Shown: positions 12,695 through 64,000 of the stretch, one piece after another
How positions within the stretch are numbered: position 1 is the stretch's first letter
Layout of the letters: every line of letters starts with the position of its first letter
Assembly (NCBI GenBank): GCA_964035545.1
Contig: OZ037766.1
Coordinates: forward strand, 10,220,722 to 10,284,721
Length of the DNA stretch: 64,000 bases
Source of the DNA: Bugula neritina
Taxonomy: Eukaryota; Animalia; Bryozoa
Direction: 5' to 3'
Translations under genes and position numbers: made by a program
Notes under the pieces: generated by a model
What the model saw: only the letters and a program-made list of their open reading frames with translations
What the model was told of the DNA's origin: nothing
Database searches by the model: none

Positions 12695-13858
12695 TCAGTT
12701 TGCAGGAGGGTTTAATGAACGCATCAAGTTTTCTTGCATTGCTTCAGCCACTGCACCATTATTGTTAGGCTTGTCTCCATTTTCTTTGAGTAGTTTGGCA
12801 GATGTACACGGAAAGGCATTACATTCAAGTTCAGTTGCACTGGTCCTTGTTGGTCTCGATGAACTTTTCCGCATACGCAGTGAGAGCAGAAAGGAAGTGA
12901 TTCTAGTAGAATACCGGGTGGAGCCTAAATTCGAAGTTTTCTCTTCACATTTCAGCAACTTACAAACAGCTTTTCTAAAACTGCTGCTTAGAAAGCCATA
13001 AAGTACTGGGTTGAGGGCACTGTTTAATTTATATAGTGCTGTTGCTACGTGATAGCCCATTATTTCTGGATGACTAGGTTGTTTGTTGAGACGAATATTA
13101 ATTAGAAATACTATCTGGTAACACCAATATGGTAACCAGCAAGAGAAAAACACCAGTATGATGCATAACACTAGTATTGTCACTTTTCTTGTTCGTTTCT
13201 TTTTGTGACCACGAGACAGAGATGGCGACTGCTTGCACAGCTTCACTATAATCAAGGTGTAGAAGACTGTTATCAATGTCATGGGCAGGAAGAATCCTAG
13301 AATCATTCTGTAGACAGTGAATGAAGTGGCCGAATCAGCTGACCAATCTAAGTTGCACATGTCATGTTCGGCTTTGCTGTACAGCAGCAGCGGCAACGAC
13401 AGCAGAGTTGCCCCAATCCAGATTAGAACACAGCTGATGAGGCAAATCACTGGTTTTTGGAAGTTATTATACTTGAGACTGCAACACACCGCCACATACC
13501 GGTCTAAACTCATTATAGTCAGCGTGTAAATACTGGAGAATATGTTGATTCCAAAGCACCCAAAGTATATTTTACACATTATGTTTCCAAACACCCATCT
13601 CCCCATAAGAAGGCTTGCTGTGGCTATTGGTATTGATAGTAAGAACAAGAAGTCCGCTAATGCTAAGTTGAAAATAAAGATAGTAGACGCAGTTTTTAAA
13701 GTTGGGCTATTGCAGACGACAACCATTGCCAACAAGTTTCCTATTAATCCAAGGACACATATAACTGCATAAAAGGTGCACATGACGTATAAGCCCACAT
13801 TATTCTGCACTTGAATATCATCTGTCATATTTGATGATAATTCTTCTATTTCCTCCAT
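12695..13858 (-). CDS. Rhodopsin-family neuropeptide GPCR, somatostatin/allatostatin-C/opioid receptor-like
   Basis: 387-aa single-exon ORF with seven hydrophobic segments and motifs GLIGN, FIFNLALAD, WVFGNIMCK, MSLDRY, CWLPYW, NSALNPVLYGF. Confidence 0.9.
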   Translation of the reverse strand: MEEIEELSSNMTDDIQVQNNVGLYVMCTFYAVICVLGLIGNLLAMVVVCNSPTLKTASTIFIFNLALADFLFLLSIPIATASLLMGRWVFGNIMCKIYFGCFGINIFSSIYTLTIMSLDRYVAVCCSLKYNNFQKPVICLISCVLIWIGATLLSLPLLLYSKAEHDMCNLDWSADSATSFTVYRMILGFFLPMTLITVFYTLIIVKLCKQSPSLSRGHKKKRTRKVTILVLCIILVFFSCWLPYWCYQIVFLINIRLNKQPSHPEIMGYHVATALYKLNSALNPVLYGFLSSSFRKAVCKLLKCEEKTSNLGSTRYSTRITSFLLSLRMRKSSSRPTRTSATELECNAFPCTSAKLLKENGDKPNNNGAVAEAMQENLMRSLNPPAN

Positions 13859-15805: not shown

Positions 15806-15852
15806 GATTATATGTATATATGTGTAAATATATGTATATATATGTATATATA

Positions 15853-15934
<82 letters not shown>
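15806..15934. repeat. (TA)n microsatellite
   Basis: Pure TA run from ~15857 to 15934 with a degenerate 5' flank. Confidence 0.97.
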
Positions 15935-34558: not shown

Positions 34559-40094
<5,536 letters not shown>

Positions 40095-44151: not shown

Positions 44152-47100
44152 ATGAGTACTAATATCAAGGTGTGTGTAAGAGTTCGGCCCGAGAATGAGA
44201 AGGAAAGGGCTGCAGCTCAGAATCATGTAGTGAGGGTGGTCGACGAGGCACTGCTGGTGTTTGATCCTGTCTATACGGCGAATGGTAAGCTTGGTTTTAT
44301 ATTCAGCTAATTTTGTTATTTATGATATCAAAAGCTGCACCATCAATATATTCTATTTCAAGAGTTTTGCTTGTTTTTATTTTAGTCACATACTTTCACG
44401 GAAAGGCTGTTAAAGATCCGACCAGCAAAAAGCCTAGAGATGTCAAGTTTGCTTTTGACCGAGTGTTCTCTCCATCGGCTACAAACATTGAAGTGTATGA
44501 ACAGACAACTAAGTGTGTCCTCAGGTCGTTAGTGGATGGATACAATTGTTCGGGTAGGTTATCCAAACGCCCGTACCTTCACCAAATATCAGAATTCCTA
44601 ATTCTATATCTCAACTGTTGTATCTCATACATTGACATCTTTATTTTCCAGTTTTTGCCTATGGGGCTACTGGGGCTGGCAAAACATTCTCCATGCTGGG
44701 ATCGCCAAAAACACCTGGTGTAATTTTCCTCAGCATGATGGACTTGTACAACATAAAAGAGTCTGAGCAAGATGACAAGCATATTGACATATCTGTGTCA
44801 TATCTTGAGGTTAGCCAAGTTGATATTCCATCTAGTACAGTCTAAGAAAGTAACTATTTTCCCCACATTAAAATAAAATTTCTGAAAACAAAGAACGCAG
44901 TTACTCTACTATTTATAAACCTAGTAAGGCATGTAATTCGATTTTCAGTTGAATTATTAGCACCTTTTCAAACTATTTCATCAAGTGTTTATTCCGTTTC
45001 TTCGGGAATTATAATGTTATATAGTTTTGAATTTATGGTGAAGAATTTTGCTGACCATTATGTCTTGGGCTGTGCTTCATATAAAACTGATTTTAACTTT
45101 TTGTTTTTTTTAAAACTATTGTTTCATGAACTCTGACTAGTTTCAGGTGGTGATGTAACACACTCAATGAGAGTTAGAATATTGTTTAGCTACTTGGGGC
45201 TGCAAGTAGGAGGATTGTGATTACAGGTATACAATGAAAATATCAAAGACTTGCTGTCGCCGAGTAACAACAACCTGCCAATTAGAGAAGATGGAAAGCA
45301 AGGAGTTATCGTTTCTGGCTTGTGTGTAAAAGAACCTGATTCTGCTGAAGAACTTCTCCAAATGCTTGAAAAGGGAAATAAAAACCGAACTCAACACCCG
45401 ACTGATGCAAATGCAGAATCTTCCAGATCCCATGCTGTCTTTCAGGTTGGTAATGTTAGATTAGATGCATTGCAATAGCGTGGAACTAGGGAGCAGCCGT
45501 GGTCTAGGGGTTAGAGTGTTTACTTAGTAAGCACGAAGGTCATGGGTTCAAACCCTAGTAAAGGCCATTGGTGATGTTAGGAAAAGCATGCAGTCATAAT
45601 TGCTCCTGTGCCTCATATGAATGAGTCTTTAAAAAACCTTTTCATCAGGGTTCTTGTGGGGATGGCGACTATAAACTTGCATGATTTTTTTTTTCATAGC
45701 AGTAAAACTCCTTACTAAGCAGGGTAGCTGGAATACGTCTTATGCCTCCCATAGACCGCACATAACATTTAATAACATTAATGGAGCATTGGTCTTTAAT
45801 GTAGCTGTATCTAGCTGTACTAGTGTCATCTTTGTTTGCTGCACCCTGATTGGCTGTGGTAAATGTTGTGGTTTTTTAAATAAGGGCTGGTGTATGTGGA
45901 GTCTTTTTACCTGGGTGATCTTTTGCACACTCACAATTTCATTACTGTGCCATGCATCATCATACAAATGGTAAAAGTAAACAAGATATCTAAATTTGCA
46001 TCAACATTACCCGCTACAAACTTGTGTGTTCAATGTCTGAATATGCATCTAAATTTAAACAATTTAGCAGGTACATGTCGCCATTTTACTGTGCGAAATT
46101 CTACTGCTGGAAAGTTGAAAGACATTGGCTTATGACTTTTGCACGTTTAGGTTTTTGTGAGAATCCGAAATTCTGCTGCTGGCCTCTCTGAAGAAGTGAA
46201 GACATCAAAATTGTCTCTTATTGATTTGGCTGGCTCTGAAAGAGCCACTGTCACCAAGAACAGAGGCGCCAGGTTTAGAGAAGGTGCTAATATCAACAAA
46301 TCTTTACTGGCTCTTGGCAACTGTATCAATGCGTTGGCTGATACAAAGGTATGTTTTGTTACGATAGTTTATTAGCCATCACATCCACATGATAAGAATA
46401 GCTTCCTCAGTCTAGTTGAATCACCAACTAGCTTTAGTTTTCTTGGCAGTATTCTTTACTAGACTCCATGACTCATCTTTCATGGATATTGATTTTATCA
46501 CCAACCATACATGTATATATCCAGTGCTAGAAGGGCTTGACATGCAATGCTTGGTTAAAAGATAAAGAGTAATTATAATTAGTTCGTGGTTTGTCATGAA
46601 TTAGTTGGCAGCACCAATTTTAGGTAGTATCTCTTATACACGTAGTTGCCACGTTATGAACCGAAAATTTTAATTCTAAACCAATATGAACTAATTACCC
46701 TAAATATGAATAGTGATCTGGTTATCTTATACAAGGGAATACAACTCTTAAAACATTGGTAGTATAGTAGGTGCATATCAATTCCACCAGTCTTTGTGAA
46801 AAATAAATTCAATGCATATATATATTATATTATGTAGCTCTGTAGTTTATATAAATATGTAGAGTGTGTTTTTTTGGTGTAGCAAACATGTTCAGTTAAT
46901 GATTTGACAGTAATTGATATACAATTAGAATAATAAGATTATAAAATGAAATAGCATTTGCTATATTTGAATTTTCATTACAATTATTTCAGATTACATT
47001 TGAATTTTAATAGGCTAAAGACCATTAGTCAAGCAAATATGCTTTGTATTGGAAGTAACAGATAAATCATCAGTAAATGATAATTTTGCTCTGTGTCAGG

Positions 47101-56751: not shown

Positions 56752-56811
56752 AAAAGTGTGCTACAGTATAATTGCATTATATTTTCTTATTTCATTTTTT
56801 CTTATTTATAT

Positions 56812-57163
56812 TGTAGTGAGTAGTGCAAGTACAAATACAGGAATCGCCCTCTCCCTATTCTTGGAATACTTAGACTCTTATGTAGCAACCAATTAGCAGC
56901 TCCGGAAGATATGCTTCCGAGTCACGTGACACTTCCCGGGTTAATAAGATTATATCACGTTGTTGTAAGCGGAGGCTTGTAGTAGTAACATGTGTTAGTA
57001 GTTGACTCTTGTATAGGATAATTTGATGTGATGTTTGTTTTATGCTTTATTGTGGATAATAAATATAATTACTCGACAGCTACCCTAGTAATTGATAACA
57101 GAATAACCAGCTAACTATACGCAAGTAAATAACTCACGCTCAGTAATTGCACAAATTACTACA
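56812..57163 (+). repeat. 5' LTR
   Basis: Direct repeat of 61720-62071; TG...CA ends; contains CCAAT, CGGAAG..CTTCCG, GTCACGTGAC and AATAAA. Confidence 0.97.
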
Positions 57164-57164
57164 G

Positions 57165-57182
57165 TGGTGGCAGCGGTGGGAT
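57165..57182 (+). promoter_or_regulatory. Primer binding site complementary to the tRNA-Leu 3' end
   Basis: TGGTGGCAGCGGTGGGAT, one base after the LTR, is the reverse complement of ...AUCCCACCGCUGCCACCA of metazoan tRNA-Leu(AAG/UAG). Confidence 0.9.
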
Positions 57183-57198
57183 CTTGCGTATAGCAGTC

Positions 57199-58149
57199 AT
57201 GGCAGAAGACGGCACGGAGCTACCCATTCCACTGAATGAAGGTGAGAGAGATAATGTTGATATACCTGTGGAACCAGTGGTGTTAGATGAAGAAGTGAGA
57301 ATTCTTAGAGAGCATGGTGAAGATAGATACCGGCTGAAGGCGCCCACCTTCACTGGCGAAGAAGCAGTGGAGCAGTTTATTCAAGAATTCCAAGATGTGA
57401 TGGAGATTGCAGAATGGCCGCCAAGGGTGGCGTTGCTAAAGCTCAGGATGGCGCTGACGGGCAAAGCTAAGCCGTACGGAGCTGGACCTGACATAGACGG
57501 AATCTTTGCTTCCCTGCGGGCCCGTTTTGGCATCTCTCCCATAGATGCGCGGGCCCGTCTACAGAGGATGCGGCGTGATCCTCACACGTCACTAGAAGAG
57601 CACGCTGCCACGGTGTACCCATTAGCGCAGATCGCATTCCGCGATCTGCCTCCGGTACACCGTGAGAGGTATACCTATGATGCCTTCGTGCAGTCCATCA
57701 ACGACTTGGGGCTCCACCATCAACTCCAAGCGAGGGGAGTCACCACAGTCGAAGATGCACTTGCGGTGGGAGAAGCCTATCTCTTGGCGACTCATATGCA
57801 CCGCAACCGCGTGGCCTCCCGCCAGGTGACCACGGAGCACTCTACTGCTCACACCGAAGTAAATGCGGAACCCTCCGCGGTGGCTAATGTGAACCAGATG
57901 TCACTAGTGTCAAAAATCTCACAGATGACTGACATGCTAGATAAGCTGGTCACCACATTAGCCTCCCCAAGCCAGGTAGATACTGCCCGTGAGCCTTGCG
58001 GGCCGCAGGTACAATCACCAGACATGGGGCACCACTTCTGCTGGGAATGCGGAAGGCCAGGACATTTCCAGAGAAACTGCCCTCAACTCCCACCAGGGTT
58101 AAACTACCCCGGCCCGCAGATGTTCCCACCTCCTGCGGGCCGTCTGTAA
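57199..58149 (+). CDS. gag: Retrotransposon Gag
   Basis: ATG at 57199 (MAEDGTELP...); capsid-like KAPTFTG..VEQFIQEF...W...L..ALTGKA; CCHC knuckle CWECGRPGHFQRNC. Confidence 0.92.
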   Translation: MAEDGTELPIPLNEGERDNVDIPVEPVVLDEEVRILREHGEDRYRLKAPTFTGEEAVEQFIQEFQDVMEIAEWPPRVALLKLRMALTGKAKPYGAGPDIDGIFASLRARFGISPIDARARLQRMRRDPHTSLEEHAATVYPLAQIAFRDLPPVHRERYTYDAFVQSINDLGLHHQLQARGVTTVEDALAVGEAYLLATHMHRNRVASRQVTTEHSTAHTEVNAEPSAVANVNQMSLVSKISQMTDMLDKLVTTLASPSQVDTAREPCGPQVQSPDMGHHFCWECGRPGHFQRNCPQLPPGLNYPGPQMFPPPAGRL

Positions 58150-60356
58150 ATCACCCAGGGAGGCCCGCGCGTCTGTCGCCCCGCTGGGCGCCGCGCGGAG
58201 ATGCTGTGAAGTGGCGACCCCCGCGGCAAGTAGGCTCAAGCCACTCGCCGCCTGGGTCCTCTACGCCACTCCGGCACCAACACGAAGCCGGCAGACGGTT
58301 GACCACAGAGCCTGCGAGGGAAACGGTACAAGCGCCGCAAGGCGTACCGCCCCAACCTCGGCAGCTGGTCAATAGTCGCCGCCAACCGTGGACCCCTCGA
58401 CCCACAGCGAGGGAGGTGCAACCACGGCACACTCAATTGCAGCCGCACGGAAGTAGCTACTTCCTGCCAGGGAAGTTAGCCGGCAAGCCTGCCAACTTCC
58501 TCCTGGACTCCGGCTGCACCACCAACCTCCTTAGCCGTCAGTTCTTTGACACCCTCAGCGCTAAGGTCAAGGACAGGTTGGCACCGTACGAGGGGGATCA
58601 CGGCACCTTGGCAGACGGGTCGTGCATTCCCTTCTACGGCATTATTGAGCTAACTGGTTACGTCCGTAACCAGGCCATCCAAGAGACGTTTATCGTCGGG
58701 CAGCTCAACGAGGATGCTATCCTCGGGATGCCATTCTTACAACGACACGGTTGTCGCATCGATTTCAGTAAATCTGCGATAATCATGGGCGACAAGGAGC
58801 TCGCTTGTGTCGATAAGTTTGGTCGTCCTCTAGCGGGAGCAGTGCAGGTAGTACGGAGCTGTACTATACCAGGCCACTCCCGGGCTACCGTCCGCTGCAA
58901 GGTAGACGGTGGCCAAACCTCTAAGTTGGGAGTTGTCGAAAGTACGCACTCGAGAGTCCAACTTGCCCGTAGTTTTAGCCGGCTCACGGGGCAAGGAGAG
59001 ATCTCAGTGCAGTGTGTCAACCCCTTCTCAGAGACAGTAGACCTACCACCCAGATCCATGCTGGGTCGCTTCCATCCTGTCCAGGAGGAAGCCATTGGGC
59101 CGTCGTCGGGAGCTACGACGGAAGGTCCTCAGCAGAGCCCGTCTCGAGGGCGGAGGACCGTCCCAACCCACGCCTCCCCTCCTCCAGGGACGCGTGGCTG
59201 CACAGGCAACGGGAAACGCCAGGCTATGGCTAGGTTGCCACATGGGTACAGTGAGGCGTTCAGCCACACAGACCACGGAGCCCGCCTAAATAGAGCAGGC
59301 TGCCGTGAGGTACCGCGGGCGGCGAGGACCGCCCCTGCTCAGCCACTTCAACAGAGGGCTGACACGCCCCCGGAGGCTGCCCAGAGCCTCCGCGCCAAAC
59401 CTGTATGGGCTGGTAACGTTAGGGAGCTGCCGAAGCTCCAGGAATGCCTTCCTGGGGTGGTAGCCGACGTGTACCGAGCGAAACAGGAGGGGCGACGACC
59501 CAGTAGTACACAACGGCGACAGGGATGCGCCGAGTTACGGCTGTACTGTCAACGTTGGAGCTCTCTGCGGGTCGGGCCAGATGGTCTGCTAACCATGACC
59601 TTGGCCACCAACAGCAGACAGCCAGTCAGGAAGAGGGTTGTCTGCCCAGTTGCCATCCGCCGGAAGTTGATACAAGACACTCACGAGGAGACTCACGGAG
59701 GAGTCCAAGGGGTGGTCACCAAGCTACAACTCCGGTGGTACTGGCCTAACATGGAACGGGATATCCGACGCAGAGTGAGACGGTGCAAAGTCTGCCAGAC
59801 CAACAAGCATAGCCGTCTCCCTGGTGAAGTGGGGCGGCAGACGCATTGTGTGAGAAGGTCTCGGCAGGCGGAGACTGTCAACCTGGCCGGAAACACCTCC
59901 ATGACACGTCAGGAAGACTTGGCGAGGCGAGAAAGGCCACTTCCGTCCTTGAAAGTGCGCCCACCGCCCCCAACGTCAAGCCTGCCATCATCACCACTTC
60001 CGGAACCAAAAACAGGTCCGGAAGTGCAAAAACCCCCCCTGGGAGGGGCTCCGCAAGGAGATGCCAACATAGGACCAGCACCACACACTAGGCAACTTCC
60101 AGCGTGTCTCAGAGACTGTGTACGTGACCGCGGTATAAGCGGCAGTAACAAAAGTCTAGAGAGGCCTCGCGTAGGAAAACAGGCAAAGAGCCGTGGGAGT
60201 TGTGATCACCACGAGAATCTCAACTTTTGCCTCGGCGGAATCTCACACGAGATTCATCCGCTGGAAGTGAAAAGCCCTAGTCACGTTTCACAACCACGCT
60301 GTCCGGTCTTTTCCTATGTTGATGCAGTCGAGAGTAGACGTGCCAGTAAACAGTAA
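57996..60356 (+). CDS. pol: Internally deleted Pol: aspartic protease plus integrase zinc-binding remnant; no RT, RNase H or DDE core
   Basis: -1 frame relative to gag; protease FLLDSGC...ILGMPFL; HHCC H-EET-H-GG...WYWPNM...CKVC; no YxDD, LxTDAS or SDxG motif visible in the 786 aa. Confidence 0.88.
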   Translation: MRAAGTITRHGAPLLLGMRKARTFPEKLPSTPTRVKLPRPADVPTSCGPSVNHPGRPARLSPRWAPRGDAVKWRPPRQVGSSHSPPGSSTPLRHQHEAGRRLTTEPARETVQAPQGVPPQPRQLVNSRRQPWTPRPTAREVQPRHTQLQPHGSSYFLPGKLAGKPANFLLDSGCTTNLLSRQFFDTLSAKVKDRLAPYEGDHGTLADGSCIPFYGIIELTGYVRNQAIQETFIVGQLNEDAILGMPFLQRHGCRIDFSKSAIIMGDKELACVDKFGRPLAGAVQVVRSCTIPGHSRATVRCKVDGGQTSKLGVVESTHSRVQLARSFSRLTGQGEISVQCVNPFSETVDLPPRSMLGRFHPVQEEAIGPSSGATTEGPQQSPSRGRRTVPTHASPPPGTRGCTGNGKRQAMARLPHGYSEAFSHTDHGARLNRAGCREVPRAARTAPAQPLQQRADTPPEAAQSLRAKPVWAGNVRELPKLQECLPGVVADVYRAKQEGRRPSSTQRRQGCAELRLYCQRWSSLRVGPDGLLTMTLATNSRQPVRKRVVCPVAIRRKLIQDTHEETHGGVQGVVTKLQLRWYWPNMERDIRRRVRRCKVCQTNKHSRLPGEVGRQTHCVRRSRQAETVNLAGNTSMTRQEDLARRERPLPSLKVRPPPPTSSLPSSPLPEPKTGPEVQKPPLGGAPQGDANIGPAPHTRQLPACLRDCVRDRGISGSNKSLERPRVGKQAKSRGSCDHHENLNFCLGGISHEIHPLEVKSPSHVSQPRCPVFSYVDAVESRRASKQ

Positions 60357-60379
60357 TCAGATACCACTTTCATTCCAAA

Positions 60380-61427
60380 ATGTCTTACTATTCTGGATCG
60401 AAGGGTGAGTTAATTATGTTTTTGGTACGATAACTAGACTGCATCAGTCAGCTACACTAGCTAGCTGGAGATTCGATAATGATAAACAGTGGTGGGAATA
60501 CACGTCGACTTTGATTTTAAGTAATCTATCATAGCGAGTGTGTTCTCCATCAACTATTCATTAGCCTGAATCTCACGAGTGTAACTGAACAGAGTACCGG
60601 TCAGGCTGTACACGCCGACGGTGTCTCAGTGTATAATCTTTAACACTGCTACTCTTTCAGATCACACTCGAGTGACCACCTCCCGGTCACGAAACCAGCC
60701 AACCTCTCTGTCTATGGAAGAAGAGCCTGTAATGGAGAATGGCATACCAGTAGTACTCCGCCGACGACACCGTTGGGTGTCACCCACGACAGAGAGGAGA
60801 ATTGAAGAAGCCTGGGGACCCAGTGGACCACACCGAACCTGCCAGGTCTGCTTTGAGGAGTGCCCGTCGCACCGCTCCTTGCGTTTACATGTGGATGCCC
60901 ATTTCCTACTCCACTTCTGTCCCTGCGGCTTCCACGACGTCTACCCGTATCCCGTGACAGTACATAAGCTAAGCTGCTTCGCCGGAGAGAACCACACTGT
61001 TGATGAAGACAGTTTCCCCCTATACCTGGATGCCATCAAACCAGTCATCAGGAAGGCTATTACCCTGGCCGCACTAACGTCAGGGTTTCACGTACTGATA
61101 CTATCTGCCCGCCATAAGTCCCCTATGGTTCAGGGCCCACCTCCTACCCCCGTCAACCCTAGCGACACCCCAGAAGTAGAAGAAACAACCATATCCCGTA
61201 TCACGGAGACCCCCGTAACCCCACCAAGACCTAGCCAGCTGGCTAACGTAGAAGAGCGGCTTCTAAGACTGCAAGCCGAATTCACACAACTTGCCCCTGA
61301 CTTGCTGGATACGACGACAGGTCTATACCAGTTGAAAGACTCAGTGGGACGACTGAAGAGGCGGCTACGGGCCCGACAGGCTCGACACCGAGCACGGTCG
61401 CTACAAGAAGCAGAGTCCAACCAATGA
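60380..61427 (+). CDS. Accessory ORF3 of the LTR element: tandem zinc finger plus coiled-coil protein, probably spliced
   Basis: Mini-exon 60380-60404 (MSYYSGSK, donor G|GTGAGT) joins acceptor CTCTTTCAG|A at 60660/60661 in frame with ORF 60621-61427. C-x2-C-x12-H-x3-H followed by C-x-C-x12-H-x3-C; heptad-like Leu-rich segment and Arg-rich C terminus. Confidence 0.75.
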
Positions 61428-61708
61428 GAATGCCTGGGGTAGGCACCTTCGTTGAGCTATAGCTCGTTTAGGATATGACGAGCGCTCCGACATTGGCCCG
61501 CGTGCTGGTAAGCACCCTCTCTCTTAATAGCTGACTAGATGTGTGTGATCGATCACCCTGTTGTCTTCTAATGTAAACGTTGTCGTGTTTAACTATTTCT
61601 TTTCTTACTCTTTGTGGGTTTACTTATGAATATTTCCTTTTTGGATTATTGTATGGTTTTTCATTATGTTTTTTATTATTGTGTTATCAGAAAGTAGGGC
61701 TTTCTGCT

Positions 61709-61719
61709 GGGGGGGACGG
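61709..61719 (+). promoter_or_regulatory. Polypurine tract
   Basis: GGGGGGGACGG immediately before the 3' LTR. Confidence 0.85.
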
Positions 61720-62071
61720 TGTAGTGAGTAGTGCAAGTACAAATACAGGAATCGCCCTCTCCCTATTCTTGGAATACTTAGACTCTTATGTAGCAACCAA
61801 TTAGCAGCTCCGGAAGATATGCTTCCGAGTCACGTGACACTTCCCGGGTTAATAAGATTATATCACGTTGTTGTAAGCGGAGGCTTGTAGTAGTAACATG
61901 TGTTAGTAGTTGACTCTTGTATAGGATAATTTGATGTGATGTTTGTTTTATGCTTTATTGTGGATAATAAATATAATTACTCGACAGCTACCCTAGTAAT
62001 TGATAACAGAATAACCAGCTAACTATACGCAAGTAAATAACTCACGCTCAGTAATTGCACAAATTACTACA
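61720..62071 (+). repeat. 3' LTR
   Basis: Identical by eye to 56812-57163; followed by the ATAT TSD. Confidence 0.97.
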
Positions 62072-64000
62072 ATATTTAAATTTATTGAAGATTGTCTGTT
62101 ACATAGCTCTGTCCTGGTAATAGTAATAATAAAATAATATTAGTATATGTACTCTTAGCTAATAATGGTTACATGAATCAGCAAAATGTTTTTCCTAATG
62201 CTACAACCTTATAGAAGCATCTTCCTTCATAAGCTCAAGTCATCACGGCTAGTAGTTCGTTTATTCAAGATCTTGTTCTAATTTACTTTTATTTGTTTGG
62301 ACTTCTATCAATTTAAAGCAATTATATTAATTTCTAAAAATATTATTTGAATAACAAAACTAATTCAAAATCATTAAATGCTAGCCATCAGAAATTTGAG
62401 TGTACAATGTCGTATCTATAAAATGTCAAGTTTAGCTACGAATTCCTGTACAAGCATAAAGAAGATAGGCATGTATGCTTTGGGTTTTCATTGATAACTT
62501 GATGTATATACATGTGAAGGTGGTCATACTTACAGCTGATTGGTTGGGGTTTGTTTATACACATGGTATACACCCTTAATCAACTCTGGTTAAGTCAAGG
62601 ATATACAGTCGGTAGTTAGGTAGTATGTTAAAGACCAACACTTTATCGTGACAAATAGTAATAATATATATTATGTATTTAGTCTAAACTCTAAAATAAT
62701 TATACACGTAGCTGTTGAAAGCATTCTCACAACTGTCTGTTGAAAAGTTAAGTTGATTATTGAGTTGGTAGTTGCAACAAATAACTGGTTGACTAATGGA
62801 CCCAAATCTCTAAGGGCCTGCTATGTGTGACCAACAACTGCCACCTAATTAGAATGGTCAAGAGTAAATAAAATATTCAAGCTGATGTCTTTGTAGTTGG
62901 TGAGAAGGATTTGAAATGCTTTGACGATAATGCCTGGGTGCTGAGCAGTTACCGAGTTTGGCGTTACGCGAGAAGTACCTGCAATGAAACGTTGGGGGAC
63001 TATTTCTATTTGTTTGCAAACTTTCTCTATGACGTGTCTACACCTGTGAGTAGTTTCATTTAGCAAATATTCTGTTTGACCTACTTTTACAAAGTGTTAC
63101 CTCATTGAATACAAATAAAATACAATGATGAGGTAGTTTAAAGAAAACTTATCTAGCCTGTTCGCTAGCGGAAAATTCTTATGTATGAAGTTTGTTGACC
63201 ATATAGGGAAAAAGCAATTTAGCTTATAAAATATTTGCGTAACTAATTATATTTCCTAGATTATGTTGTTGTAATTTTTTGCTCTTTAATTTTTGATATT
63301 TCATGCAATCATGTAGGTACTTTTTTATCTAAATATTTTAGTTTAATGTTATACACTTAGAGTACATAATAATGTAGATATATGTAAATTATACTATAAA
63401 TTTGTATTTAGTGATATTAATTTTATTTAGCTTGCCATATGCCCAGGTTCAGAGTAAATGCAATAAGTCTCAACTACACATGAGTAAATTAAGTATAATG
63501 ACATTATTCTGAACATATGTTCTCATAAATCTTTATAACATTGATATTACTGACATATTAGTATAAGTAAATTCAATAGCAGTATGGGATTATTCTATAT
63601 ATTTAATGCATAGTTGTATTTCAAAGCTTTTCATTTTAAGCTGATCTCCAGAATGTTGATGCTGTCATAATTTTTCTGACCCTAATATCTACAAATTAAG
63701 CAACTGGGGAATTTTTTTAACAAAAAGTAATTTTTGGTGCCTTGATGTTCTAAATAAGTGCATTACACTTAAATATTTACTTAGAATTGATTGTCTAAAA
63801 ACCCTGAATTAAGATCATCTACAAACATAATTAGTTACTTACCTTGAAGCTATATTATGAATAATTGATGCAAGTGAAGATTTCTATGTATGATGAGCAC
63901 TATATAAAATTGTAAAGAAAGATATATGTTAGATATATATACACACACAGCCTATATATACATACATACTTGTGTGTATATAAATATTGATTGCTATGTA

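Follow-up and report, generated by a model that had tools for sequence, protein, structure and literature searches.

How can a retrotransposon that encodes neither a reverse transcriptase (RT) nor an integrase catalytic core look as though it had been reverse-transcribed and integrated only recently? The question is posed by a 5,260-bp long terminal repeat (LTR) element at positions 56812-62071 of a stretch of Bugula neritina DNA (contig OZ037766.1), which was analysed at its full length of 64,000 nucleotides and is referred to as the window; all features of the element lie on the + strand. A first-pass annotation of this DNA, made from its letters, had described a freshly inserted element with Gag and protease and had proposed a satellite-like lineage borrowing the missing enzymes from a helper. 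Our analysis indicates that the element most probably integrated recently and belongs to an old branch of Ty3/gypsy type in an animal genome, one that is semi-autonomous, helper-dependent and of single origin. Because this branch lost RT and the integrase core long ago and is still spreading, it would have to draw on the enzymes of full-length relatives. Signs of recent activity are the identical LTRs, three open reading frames (ORFs) that are all open, and other copies at 99.0-99.4% identity.

Alignment of the 5′ LTR (56812-57163, with AATAAA at 57058-57063) and the 3′ LTR (61720-62071), each 352 nt long and bounded by TG...CA, gave matches at 352/352 positions (100%), in agreement with the identity previously judged by eye; no further LTR copies were found within the window. 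The perfect target-site duplication of the first-pass annotation was also found, as ATAT at 56808-56811 and again at 62072-62075, but it is only 4 bp long and lies in AT-rich DNA, where the local composition gives a chance of ~0.007 for such a match. The 18-nt primer binding site (57165-57182), which starts one base beyond the 5′ LTR and is kept in relatives, is complementary to the 3′ end of tRNA-Leu(AAG) plus CCA. For this assignment, the 15 non-CCA bases of the site were scanned against a public metagenome collection and tRNA genes were called by ARAGORN; all eight of the tRNA genes overlapping a primer-core match (8/8) were tRNA-Leu(AAG) and carried the match at the 3′ end, so that the earlier choice of tRNA-Leu stands. 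The window itself contains no tRNA genes. The annotated polypurine tract is a G-rich run (61709-61719) adjoining the 3′ LTR, within a 36-nt conserved block (61684-61719) that is near-identical in the window element, one RT-less relative (L002) and a full-length relative (L004/L005). Direct TG...CA LTRs with a short (4-6 bp) target duplication, and a tRNA primer site by the 5′ LTR with a polypurine tract by the 3′ LTR, place the element among those of Ty3/gypsy type. The GC content of its internal region (57000-61000) is 50-61%, against ~32% in the surrounding DNA, and this sharp contrast with the flanks persists across the diverged family.

Deletion junctions and the history of the RT-less lineage

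A Gag word search retrieved 119 relatives, nearly all on short contigs from two Joint Genome Institute (JGI) metagenome samples. Over 3.4-3.7 kb, contigs L001 and L007 match the window element at 99.0-99.4% identity, L002/L003 and L006 are 77-78% identical and collinear along the whole element, and L004/L005 represent a 7.4-kb full-length relative of ~73% identity, whose own LTRs are 91.5% identical to each other. The pol region of L004 encodes Asp_protease, RVT_1, RT_RNaseH, rve and SH3_Tf2-1 in this order, and the family is therefore of Ty3/gypsy type. The window element does not have the order protease-RT-RNase H-integrase, since it holds only the protease and the integrase zinc finger; as the order is complete in L004, the window element is a deleted derivative and not an autonomous member.

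Collinearity with L004 located two deletions in pol. At the first junction (J1, 59344..59345), ~1.35 kb of L004 encoding RT and RNase H is missing, and at the second (J2, 59895..59905), ~0.93 kb encoding the integrase catalytic core is missing, directly after the first core strand. The window element, L001, L002 and L006 align across J2 free of gaps and pass from the left flank of L004 to its right flank at one common position, an identity that spans copies differing by ~22% in DNA. The J1 breakpoint is common to L002, L003 and L006 and falls at a GGAGGTC microhomology present on both sides in L004; nine additional RT-less Pol proteins have the same spacing across J1 as L002. From the window element and L001 an extra 102 nt (34 codons, in frame) spanning the J1 breakpoint is gone, and every secondary indel at J1 (102, 90 and 12 nt) preserves the frame. 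The simplest history would begin with two old deletions, to which the subfamily of the window element added a nested in-frame loss. Deletions peculiar to this one copy, the outcome named beforehand as speaking against a lineage, were not what we found: they recur in L001 and L007 (99%) and in L002/L003 and L006 (77-78%).

A maximum-likelihood tree of the region from the protease to J1 (32 rows) separated 14 RT-less rows from 18 others by a branch with support of 100/99. The RT-less rows comprise 11 confirmed ones and three with early-stopping proteins, the latter also bearing the RT-less junction pattern, and the opposite side holds 13 RT-bearing rows (RT confirmed), four unclassified ones and one of another deletion type. 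Within the RT-less side, the subfamily of the window element branches off first. Synonymous divergence (dS) between the window element and L002 is 0.43-0.69 in gag and pol, and the RT-less lineage is therefore old. With common junctions, a one-sided 100/99 split and ratios of nonsynonymous to synonymous divergence (omega) below 1, the loss belongs to a propagating lineage.

Further internal-deletion derivatives were seen on the RT-bearing side of the family (P0131; P0149 on L008:10001-11431; L134), one of which has the start of RT fused to the integrase C-terminal region within 476 amino acids; pol segments have therefore been shed repeatedly.

Retained coding capacity and its constraint

The gag ORF (57199..58149) has 316 codons plus a stop and encodes a CCHC zinc knuckle (Pfam zf-CCHC). 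It is followed, in the -1 frame relative to gag, by a pol-frame ORF of 786 codons (57996..60356) in which Asp_protease and Integrase_H2C2 are the only Pfam domains; RVT, RNase H and rve domains were found by Pfam in none of the element's ORFs, as the first-pass annotation had held. The aspartic protease domain (58467..58745; Pfam Asp_protease_2 / gag-asp_proteas) has its active-site Asp codon at 58506-58508, and its DSG and ILGMPFL motifs are invariant in all RT-less relatives. Beyond J1 lies the integrase N-terminal zinc-binding domain (HHCC, 59646..59813; Pfam Integrase_H2C2, PF17921, E = 1e-14), whose HHCC ligands are retained in 7/7 unbroken RT-less proteins. The position of the first catalytic Asp of the integrase is D or N among RT-less proteins and the rest of the core is gone; after J2, an integrase C-terminal tail remnant that includes the pol stop codon (59906..60356) aligns to positions 9686-10140 of L004, which lie downstream of its rve core. 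A CCHC-knuckle Gag together with an H2C2 integrase N-terminal domain of Ty3/gypsy type agrees with the structural assignment. GAG and protease are intact while RT and the integrase core are absent, which is the content of a GAG-Pro lineage.

A candidate -1 frameshift signal of textbook-like form (58098..58142), placed where gag and pol overlap, would join the two frames. It consists of a G_UUA_AAC heptamer (58098-58104), located fifty bases 5′ of the gag stop, a 5-nt spacer and a 10-bp GC stem pairing 58110-58119 with 58133-58142. The heptamer, which also serves equine arteritis virus as its frameshift site, is kept in the window element, L001, L006 and L004. The stem folds with z = -4.76 in the window element and z = -3.86 in L002; in L006 it forms without reaching significance (z = -0.71), and in the full-length L004 it is not conserved.

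Selection on the retained parts was estimated as omega by the NG86 method with codon bootstrap on pairwise tblastn-guided alignments of the window element with L002. Since the divergence between the window element and L002 or L006 all accrued in the RT-less state, omega reflects selection in the absence of RT. The values were 0.18 for gag (95% interval 0.12-0.26), 0.17 for the protease (0.08-0.36), 0.36 for the region from the protease to J1, 0.38 for the region from J1 to J2, which includes the zinc finger (0.25-0.61), 0.56 for the tail after J2 (0.38-0.91) and 0.09 for a third ORF, ORF3, described below (0.05-0.15). Apart from the tail, none of these regions had a single bootstrap replicate that reached an omega of 1. 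Across RT-less relatives, omega was 0.18-0.21 for Gag, 0.17-0.24 for the protease and 0.28-0.45 for the zinc-finger region. Given the low omega, the invariant DSG and the kept HHCC, the lineage therefore keeps Gag, protease, integrase N-terminal domain and ORF3 as proteins.

The proposal that the lineage builds and matures its own particle is supported by these data (omega ~0.17-0.24 for Gag and protease within the RT-less lineage, invariant DSG, 100/99 branch). Its description as Gag plus protease was right in what it named but too narrow, because conservation extends to the zinc-finger domain of integrase and to a third ORF, which is spliced; the frameshift signal, the spliced ORF and a conserved structured RNA had not been noticed.

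Spliced ORF3 and the RNA upstream of it

ORF3 is located downstream of pol and makes up one fifth of the internal region. Its exon 2 (60661..61427, with the acceptor AG at 60659-60660) encodes a C2H2-like zinc finger, a long C-terminal helix and an arginine-rich tail, and 134 relatives of it were found, none with a Pfam domain or a name; ORF3 is also present in full-length relatives. The predicted protein of one of these relatives, P0169, starts with the first 14 residues of Gag. The contig that encodes it, L010, carries a processed copy in which gag codons 1-14 are joined at the donor 57241|57242 to the acceptor 60660|60661, in the order LTR end, primer site, gag codons 1-14, ORF3, polypurine block and 3′ LTR. 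The corresponding donor in the window element (D1, G|GT, 57241..57243) follows gag codon 14, with the exon ending at 57241 in phase 1, and its GT is kept in relatives; as D1 and the ORF3 acceptor are both in phase 1, the reading frame is kept. The processed copy provides natural evidence for the production of ORF3 from a spliced subgenomic RNA. The copy itself (L010:829-2282) has the form of a retrotransposed spliced ORF3 messenger, and the contig lacks the greater part of its 5′ LTR.

A second conserved donor (D2, G|GT, 60404-60406, phase 1) was found between pol and ORF3, at the end of a mini-exon (60380..60406) comprising an ATG plus eight codons. The mini-exon ATG and the GTGAGT of D2 are invariant in eight copies, RT-less and full-length. 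In the consensus fold described below, the D2 donor is pairable with CUUACU inside the mini-exon (helix 2); these sites are invariant, hence they show no covariation.

The ORF3 protein, searched as its exon 2 part, gave no match in Pfam and PDB sequence searches. Its AlphaFold model, of moderate quality (predicted local distance difference test score, pLDDT, 65.7), places the predicted C-terminal helix at model residues 192-253, and Foldseek searches with this model against PDB and BFVD returned nothing below E = 1. An envelope protein was considered and rejected, as ORF3 has no signal peptide, no membrane segment (maximum hydropathy 1.47, with nothing above the usual threshold) and no fold or sequence match. 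In avian leukosis virus, the subgenomic env RNA has its donor just inside gag and the first gag codons are fused to env. The element resembles simple retroviruses and errantivirus-like Ty3/gypsy elements in having a spliced third ORF in the env position with the first gag codons fused to it, but differs from them in that ORF3 is short (~270 amino acids), lacks a signal peptide or membrane segment and has no envelope match; with the acidic start of Gag as the N-terminus of ORF3, the element does not belong with errantiviruses or Env-bearing retroviruses.

From the pol stop to the ORF3 acceptor (60357-60665) the DNA is non-coding and more conserved than the coding regions, and its fold is far more stable than that of shuffled sequence (z = -4.62). 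A consensus structure derived from eight copies of both lineages has 94% of its cells paired, and 11 pairs are changed on both sides, compared with 4.0 +/- 1.5 in shuffles (0/500) and 1-5 in slid controls. The core of this structure, a long hairpin (60468..60574), lies inside the region removed by splicing. The region 60357-60665 is a candidate cis-acting RNA that would be present only in unspliced transcripts. Because the structure comes from the same alignment and from eight sequences only, the hairpin is a good lead and not proof. No Rfam matches were found anywhere in the window.

For ORF3 (60663-61424), dS between the window element and L002 is 1.8, far above the 0.43-0.69 of gag and pol (57199-60353). 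Contig L007:1-4770 carries a 3′ part (95.9% identical to the window element), an LTR and then a 5′ part (99.4%), an order that corresponds either to a tandem pair with a common LTR or to an assembly path through a repeat. The high dS of ORF3 and the mosaic identity of L007 hint at template-switching recombination between subfamilies.

Proposed helper supply, competing explanations and known systems

Full-length relatives and RT-less elements agree in the final bases of the LTR, in the primer site, in the polypurine block and in the opening bases of the 3′ LTR. RT-bearing relatives with such matching ends and primer sites are present in the same metagenome samples as the RT-less copies, but are broken or fragmentary. 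The tRNA-Leu-primed helper of the first-pass annotation is thus supported as far as RT-bearing relatives with matching LTR ends, primer site and polypurine block exist, but no intact helper Pol was found and its use is deduced from these signals.

From these observations the following course of events may be proposed. In an ancestor, two internal deletions would have removed RT together with RNase H and the catalytic core of integrase, and its RT-less descendants would have continued to transpose and diversify. In the present element, the LTR would drive a full-length RNA from which Gag is translated, and a -1 frameshift at G_UUA_AAC would yield a Gag-protease-deltaPol fusion. A spliced RNA joining gag codons 1-14 to the acceptor at 60661 would yield the ORF3 protein, and the unspliced RNA, once packaged, would be copied into DNA from the tRNA-Leu primer and inserted by RT and integrase acting in trans. 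The most likely supplier would be the RT-bearing sister lineage, which has the same cis signals.

A more speculative extension, which we regard as doubtful, is that the fusion of protease and integrase zinc finger serves as an adaptor docking on the helper's integrase or RT, and that in this Ty3/gypsy element of an invertebrate-type genome a circuit like that of Rev and the Rev response element operates: the spliced, arginine-rich coiled-coil ORF3 protein would act on the hairpin at 60468-60574, which only unspliced RNA contains, and so govern whether genomic RNA is exported or packaged, and the circuit would be common to the lineage and its helpers. If true, this would be a regulatory pair like those of complex retroviruses. 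The proposals offer concrete hypotheses on accessory-gene regulation in Ty3/gypsy elements.

Several points weigh against a helper-dependent lineage of single origin. The relatives are all short metagenome contigs and none comes from the window's own genome. RT-bearing relatives are fragmentary or broken (the LTRs of L004 are 91.5% identical and its pol is split into several ORFs), with RT-bearing family proteins of at most 735 amino acids. An intact full-length Pol of the family was not found, a search of 1.84 billion proteins of any length with the pol ORF giving only family fragments, and the nearest long Pols in that library are only 29-38% identical; since the family is known from short contigs alone, the absence of an intact helper is weak evidence. 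A back-translated scan with the Gag alignment found no relative in metagenome_contigs and viral_contigs, and the JGI samples bearing the family lie outside both collections. The subfamily of the window element lacks the ancestral J1 junction itself, and its common origin with the other RT-less copies would rest on the nesting of its deletion together with J2. The protease-region tree is unrooted, although a root inside the RT-less side was discounted because it would require RT to be regained. Finally, pairwise, protein-guided estimates of omega lean low, and the tail after J2 is weakly constrained (omega ~0.55, with an interval up to 1.15 against L006).

Internally deleted, dead-on-arrival copies are common and other deletion types occur within this very family (P0131; P0149 on L008), so the element could in principle be a one-off defective copy whose deletions arose during or after the reverse transcription that led to its insertion. 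This is extremely improbable, as the junctions are common to copies 77-99% identical, the RT-less rows group together with good support and purifying selection acts on the retained ORFs; a variant in which the contigs are assembly copies of one locus is excluded by their 22% divergence. We consider it very unlikely that the insertion is older than it appears or is partly an assembly product, with LTRs made identical by gene conversion, polishing or repeat collapse, which would remove the need for current activity. Zero differences in 352 nt bound LTR divergence only below ~0.85% (95% Poisson bound) and the related contigs L007 (3′ part, LTR, 5′ part) and L001 (inverted flank fragment) contain odd joins, but the three open ORFs, the target-site duplication and independent assemblies with the same internal structure at 99% identity all argue against it. 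The fragment in L001 (L001:1-183, its 5′ flank) is an inverted piece of the 3′ end of another copy. A domesticated host gene was also considered and rejected in view of the LTRs, the target-site duplication and the many diverged copies.

Two further alternatives accept a non-autonomous lineage and differ on its parts. The pol remnant, zinc finger and tail together, might be non-functional read-through, its apparent constraint being RNA-level or compositional or reflecting too little time for decay. The tail (omega 0.55, interval to 1.15 against L006), the first catalytic Asp position that is D or N and the ~60% GC of the region would suit such a remnant; we nevertheless hold it to be rather unlikely, because the region from J1 to J2 has an omega of 0.38 (0.25-0.61) over a dS of ~0.45, all accrued without RT, the HHCC ligands are kept in 7/7 unbroken proteins and none of the secondary indels at J1 (102, 90 and 12 nt) breaks the frame. 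The helper might, on the other hand, be another tRNA-Leu-primed Ty3/gypsy family of the host in place of the RT-bearing sister lineage. Consistent with this, the window element and L004 have LTRs that cannot be aligned outside their termini, an intact sister Pol was not found in the 1.84-billion-protein search, and the wheat partners discussed below have only short motifs in common (PMC9744471). As the sister lineage has LTR termini, a primer site and a ~36-nt polypurine block almost exactly like those of the window element, a helper from another family appears unlikely, and supply by the sister lineage is preferred.

The statement of the first-pass annotation that non-autonomous elements usually lose their coding capacity or keep only gag was incomplete, since Gag-protease lineages termed semi-autonomous have been described in wheat: the Gypsy families RLG_Sabrina_SA and RLG_WHAM encode GAG and protease only, with RLG_Wilma as their autonomous partner (PMC9744471). 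The Sabrina_SA and WHAM lineages have persisted for millions of years and diversified into subfamilies, and their LTR termini and primer site are as in the partner (PMC9744471). The present element is like them in its lineage-wide GAG-protease content without RT or integrase core, in LTR termini and primer site that match those of RT-bearing relatives, and in its subfamilies. It is unlike them in residing in an animal genome, in its extensive homology to autonomous relatives (~73% DNA identity in the common parts), and in keeping an integrase zinc finger in frame with the protease, a spliced ORF3 and a structured RNA. Wheat RLG_Quinta was derived from the RLG_Cereba family by loss of RT and integrase with GAG kept; Quinta and Cereba have kept the same primer site, polypurine tract and LTR ends, and the GAG tree indicates a single origin (PMC11302176). 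The element resembles Quinta as a non-autonomous derivative of single origin with GAG, conserved primer site, polypurine tract and LTR ends, and differs from it in that Quinta has GAG along with a domain whose function is unknown, without a protease, whereas the element still has its protease, the N-terminal domain of integrase and ORF3.

With large retrotransposon derivatives (LARD) and terminal-repeat retrotransposons in miniature (TRIM) the element has in common LTRs, a primer site and a polypurine tract without RT or integrase, and probably also mobilisation in trans. LARD and TRIM by definition have no conserved coding capacity, unlike this element with its three intact, constrained ORFs, and it belongs to neither. 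In the mouse, IAP I-delta-1 and ETn/MusD are internally deleted or non-coding LTR elements that rely on full-length relatives acting in trans, and they may be more active than any other member of their family. ETn encodes nothing, and in IAP I-delta-1 a single deletion fuses gag and pol and RT is kept; these are class II retroviruses, not Ty3/gypsy elements. The element is thus similar to them as an animal LTR element probably dependent on full-length relatives in trans and different in being of Ty3/gypsy type. The helper-dependent GAG-Pro lifestyle has already been described in wheat, and no new category is needed here; new are the animal host, the in-frame fusion of the protease with a retained integrase zinc finger, and ORF3, which is spliced and accompanied by an RNA element. 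Long-lived semi-autonomous LTR lineages, so far best documented in cereals, would accordingly exist in an animal genome too, and the evidence for this one is unusually clear, with conserved junctions, a single-origin tree and codon-level constraint on each retained part. The retained parts (Gag, protease, integrase zinc finger, accessory ORF and structured RNA) would represent a natural dissection of what such an element has to supply in cis.

Elsewhere in the window, an intronless gene for a rhodopsin-family receptor of 387 amino acids lies at 12695-13858 on the - strand (7tm_1, E = 1.6e-57) and an exon encoding a kinesin motor domain at 44313-44723 on the + strand; by these two genes, the window is animal nuclear DNA. 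A human origin was considered and rejected in view of these genes, of the window's mean GC content of ~32%, of a young Ty3/gypsy-type element whose ORFs are open and of relatives confined to environmental and host-associated assemblies. Tandem repeats occur at 15809-15934, 35055-35200 and 36655-36773, comprising (TA)63 and (TAG)49 microsatellites and a minisatellite with 6.6 copies of an 18-nt unit (98% identity).

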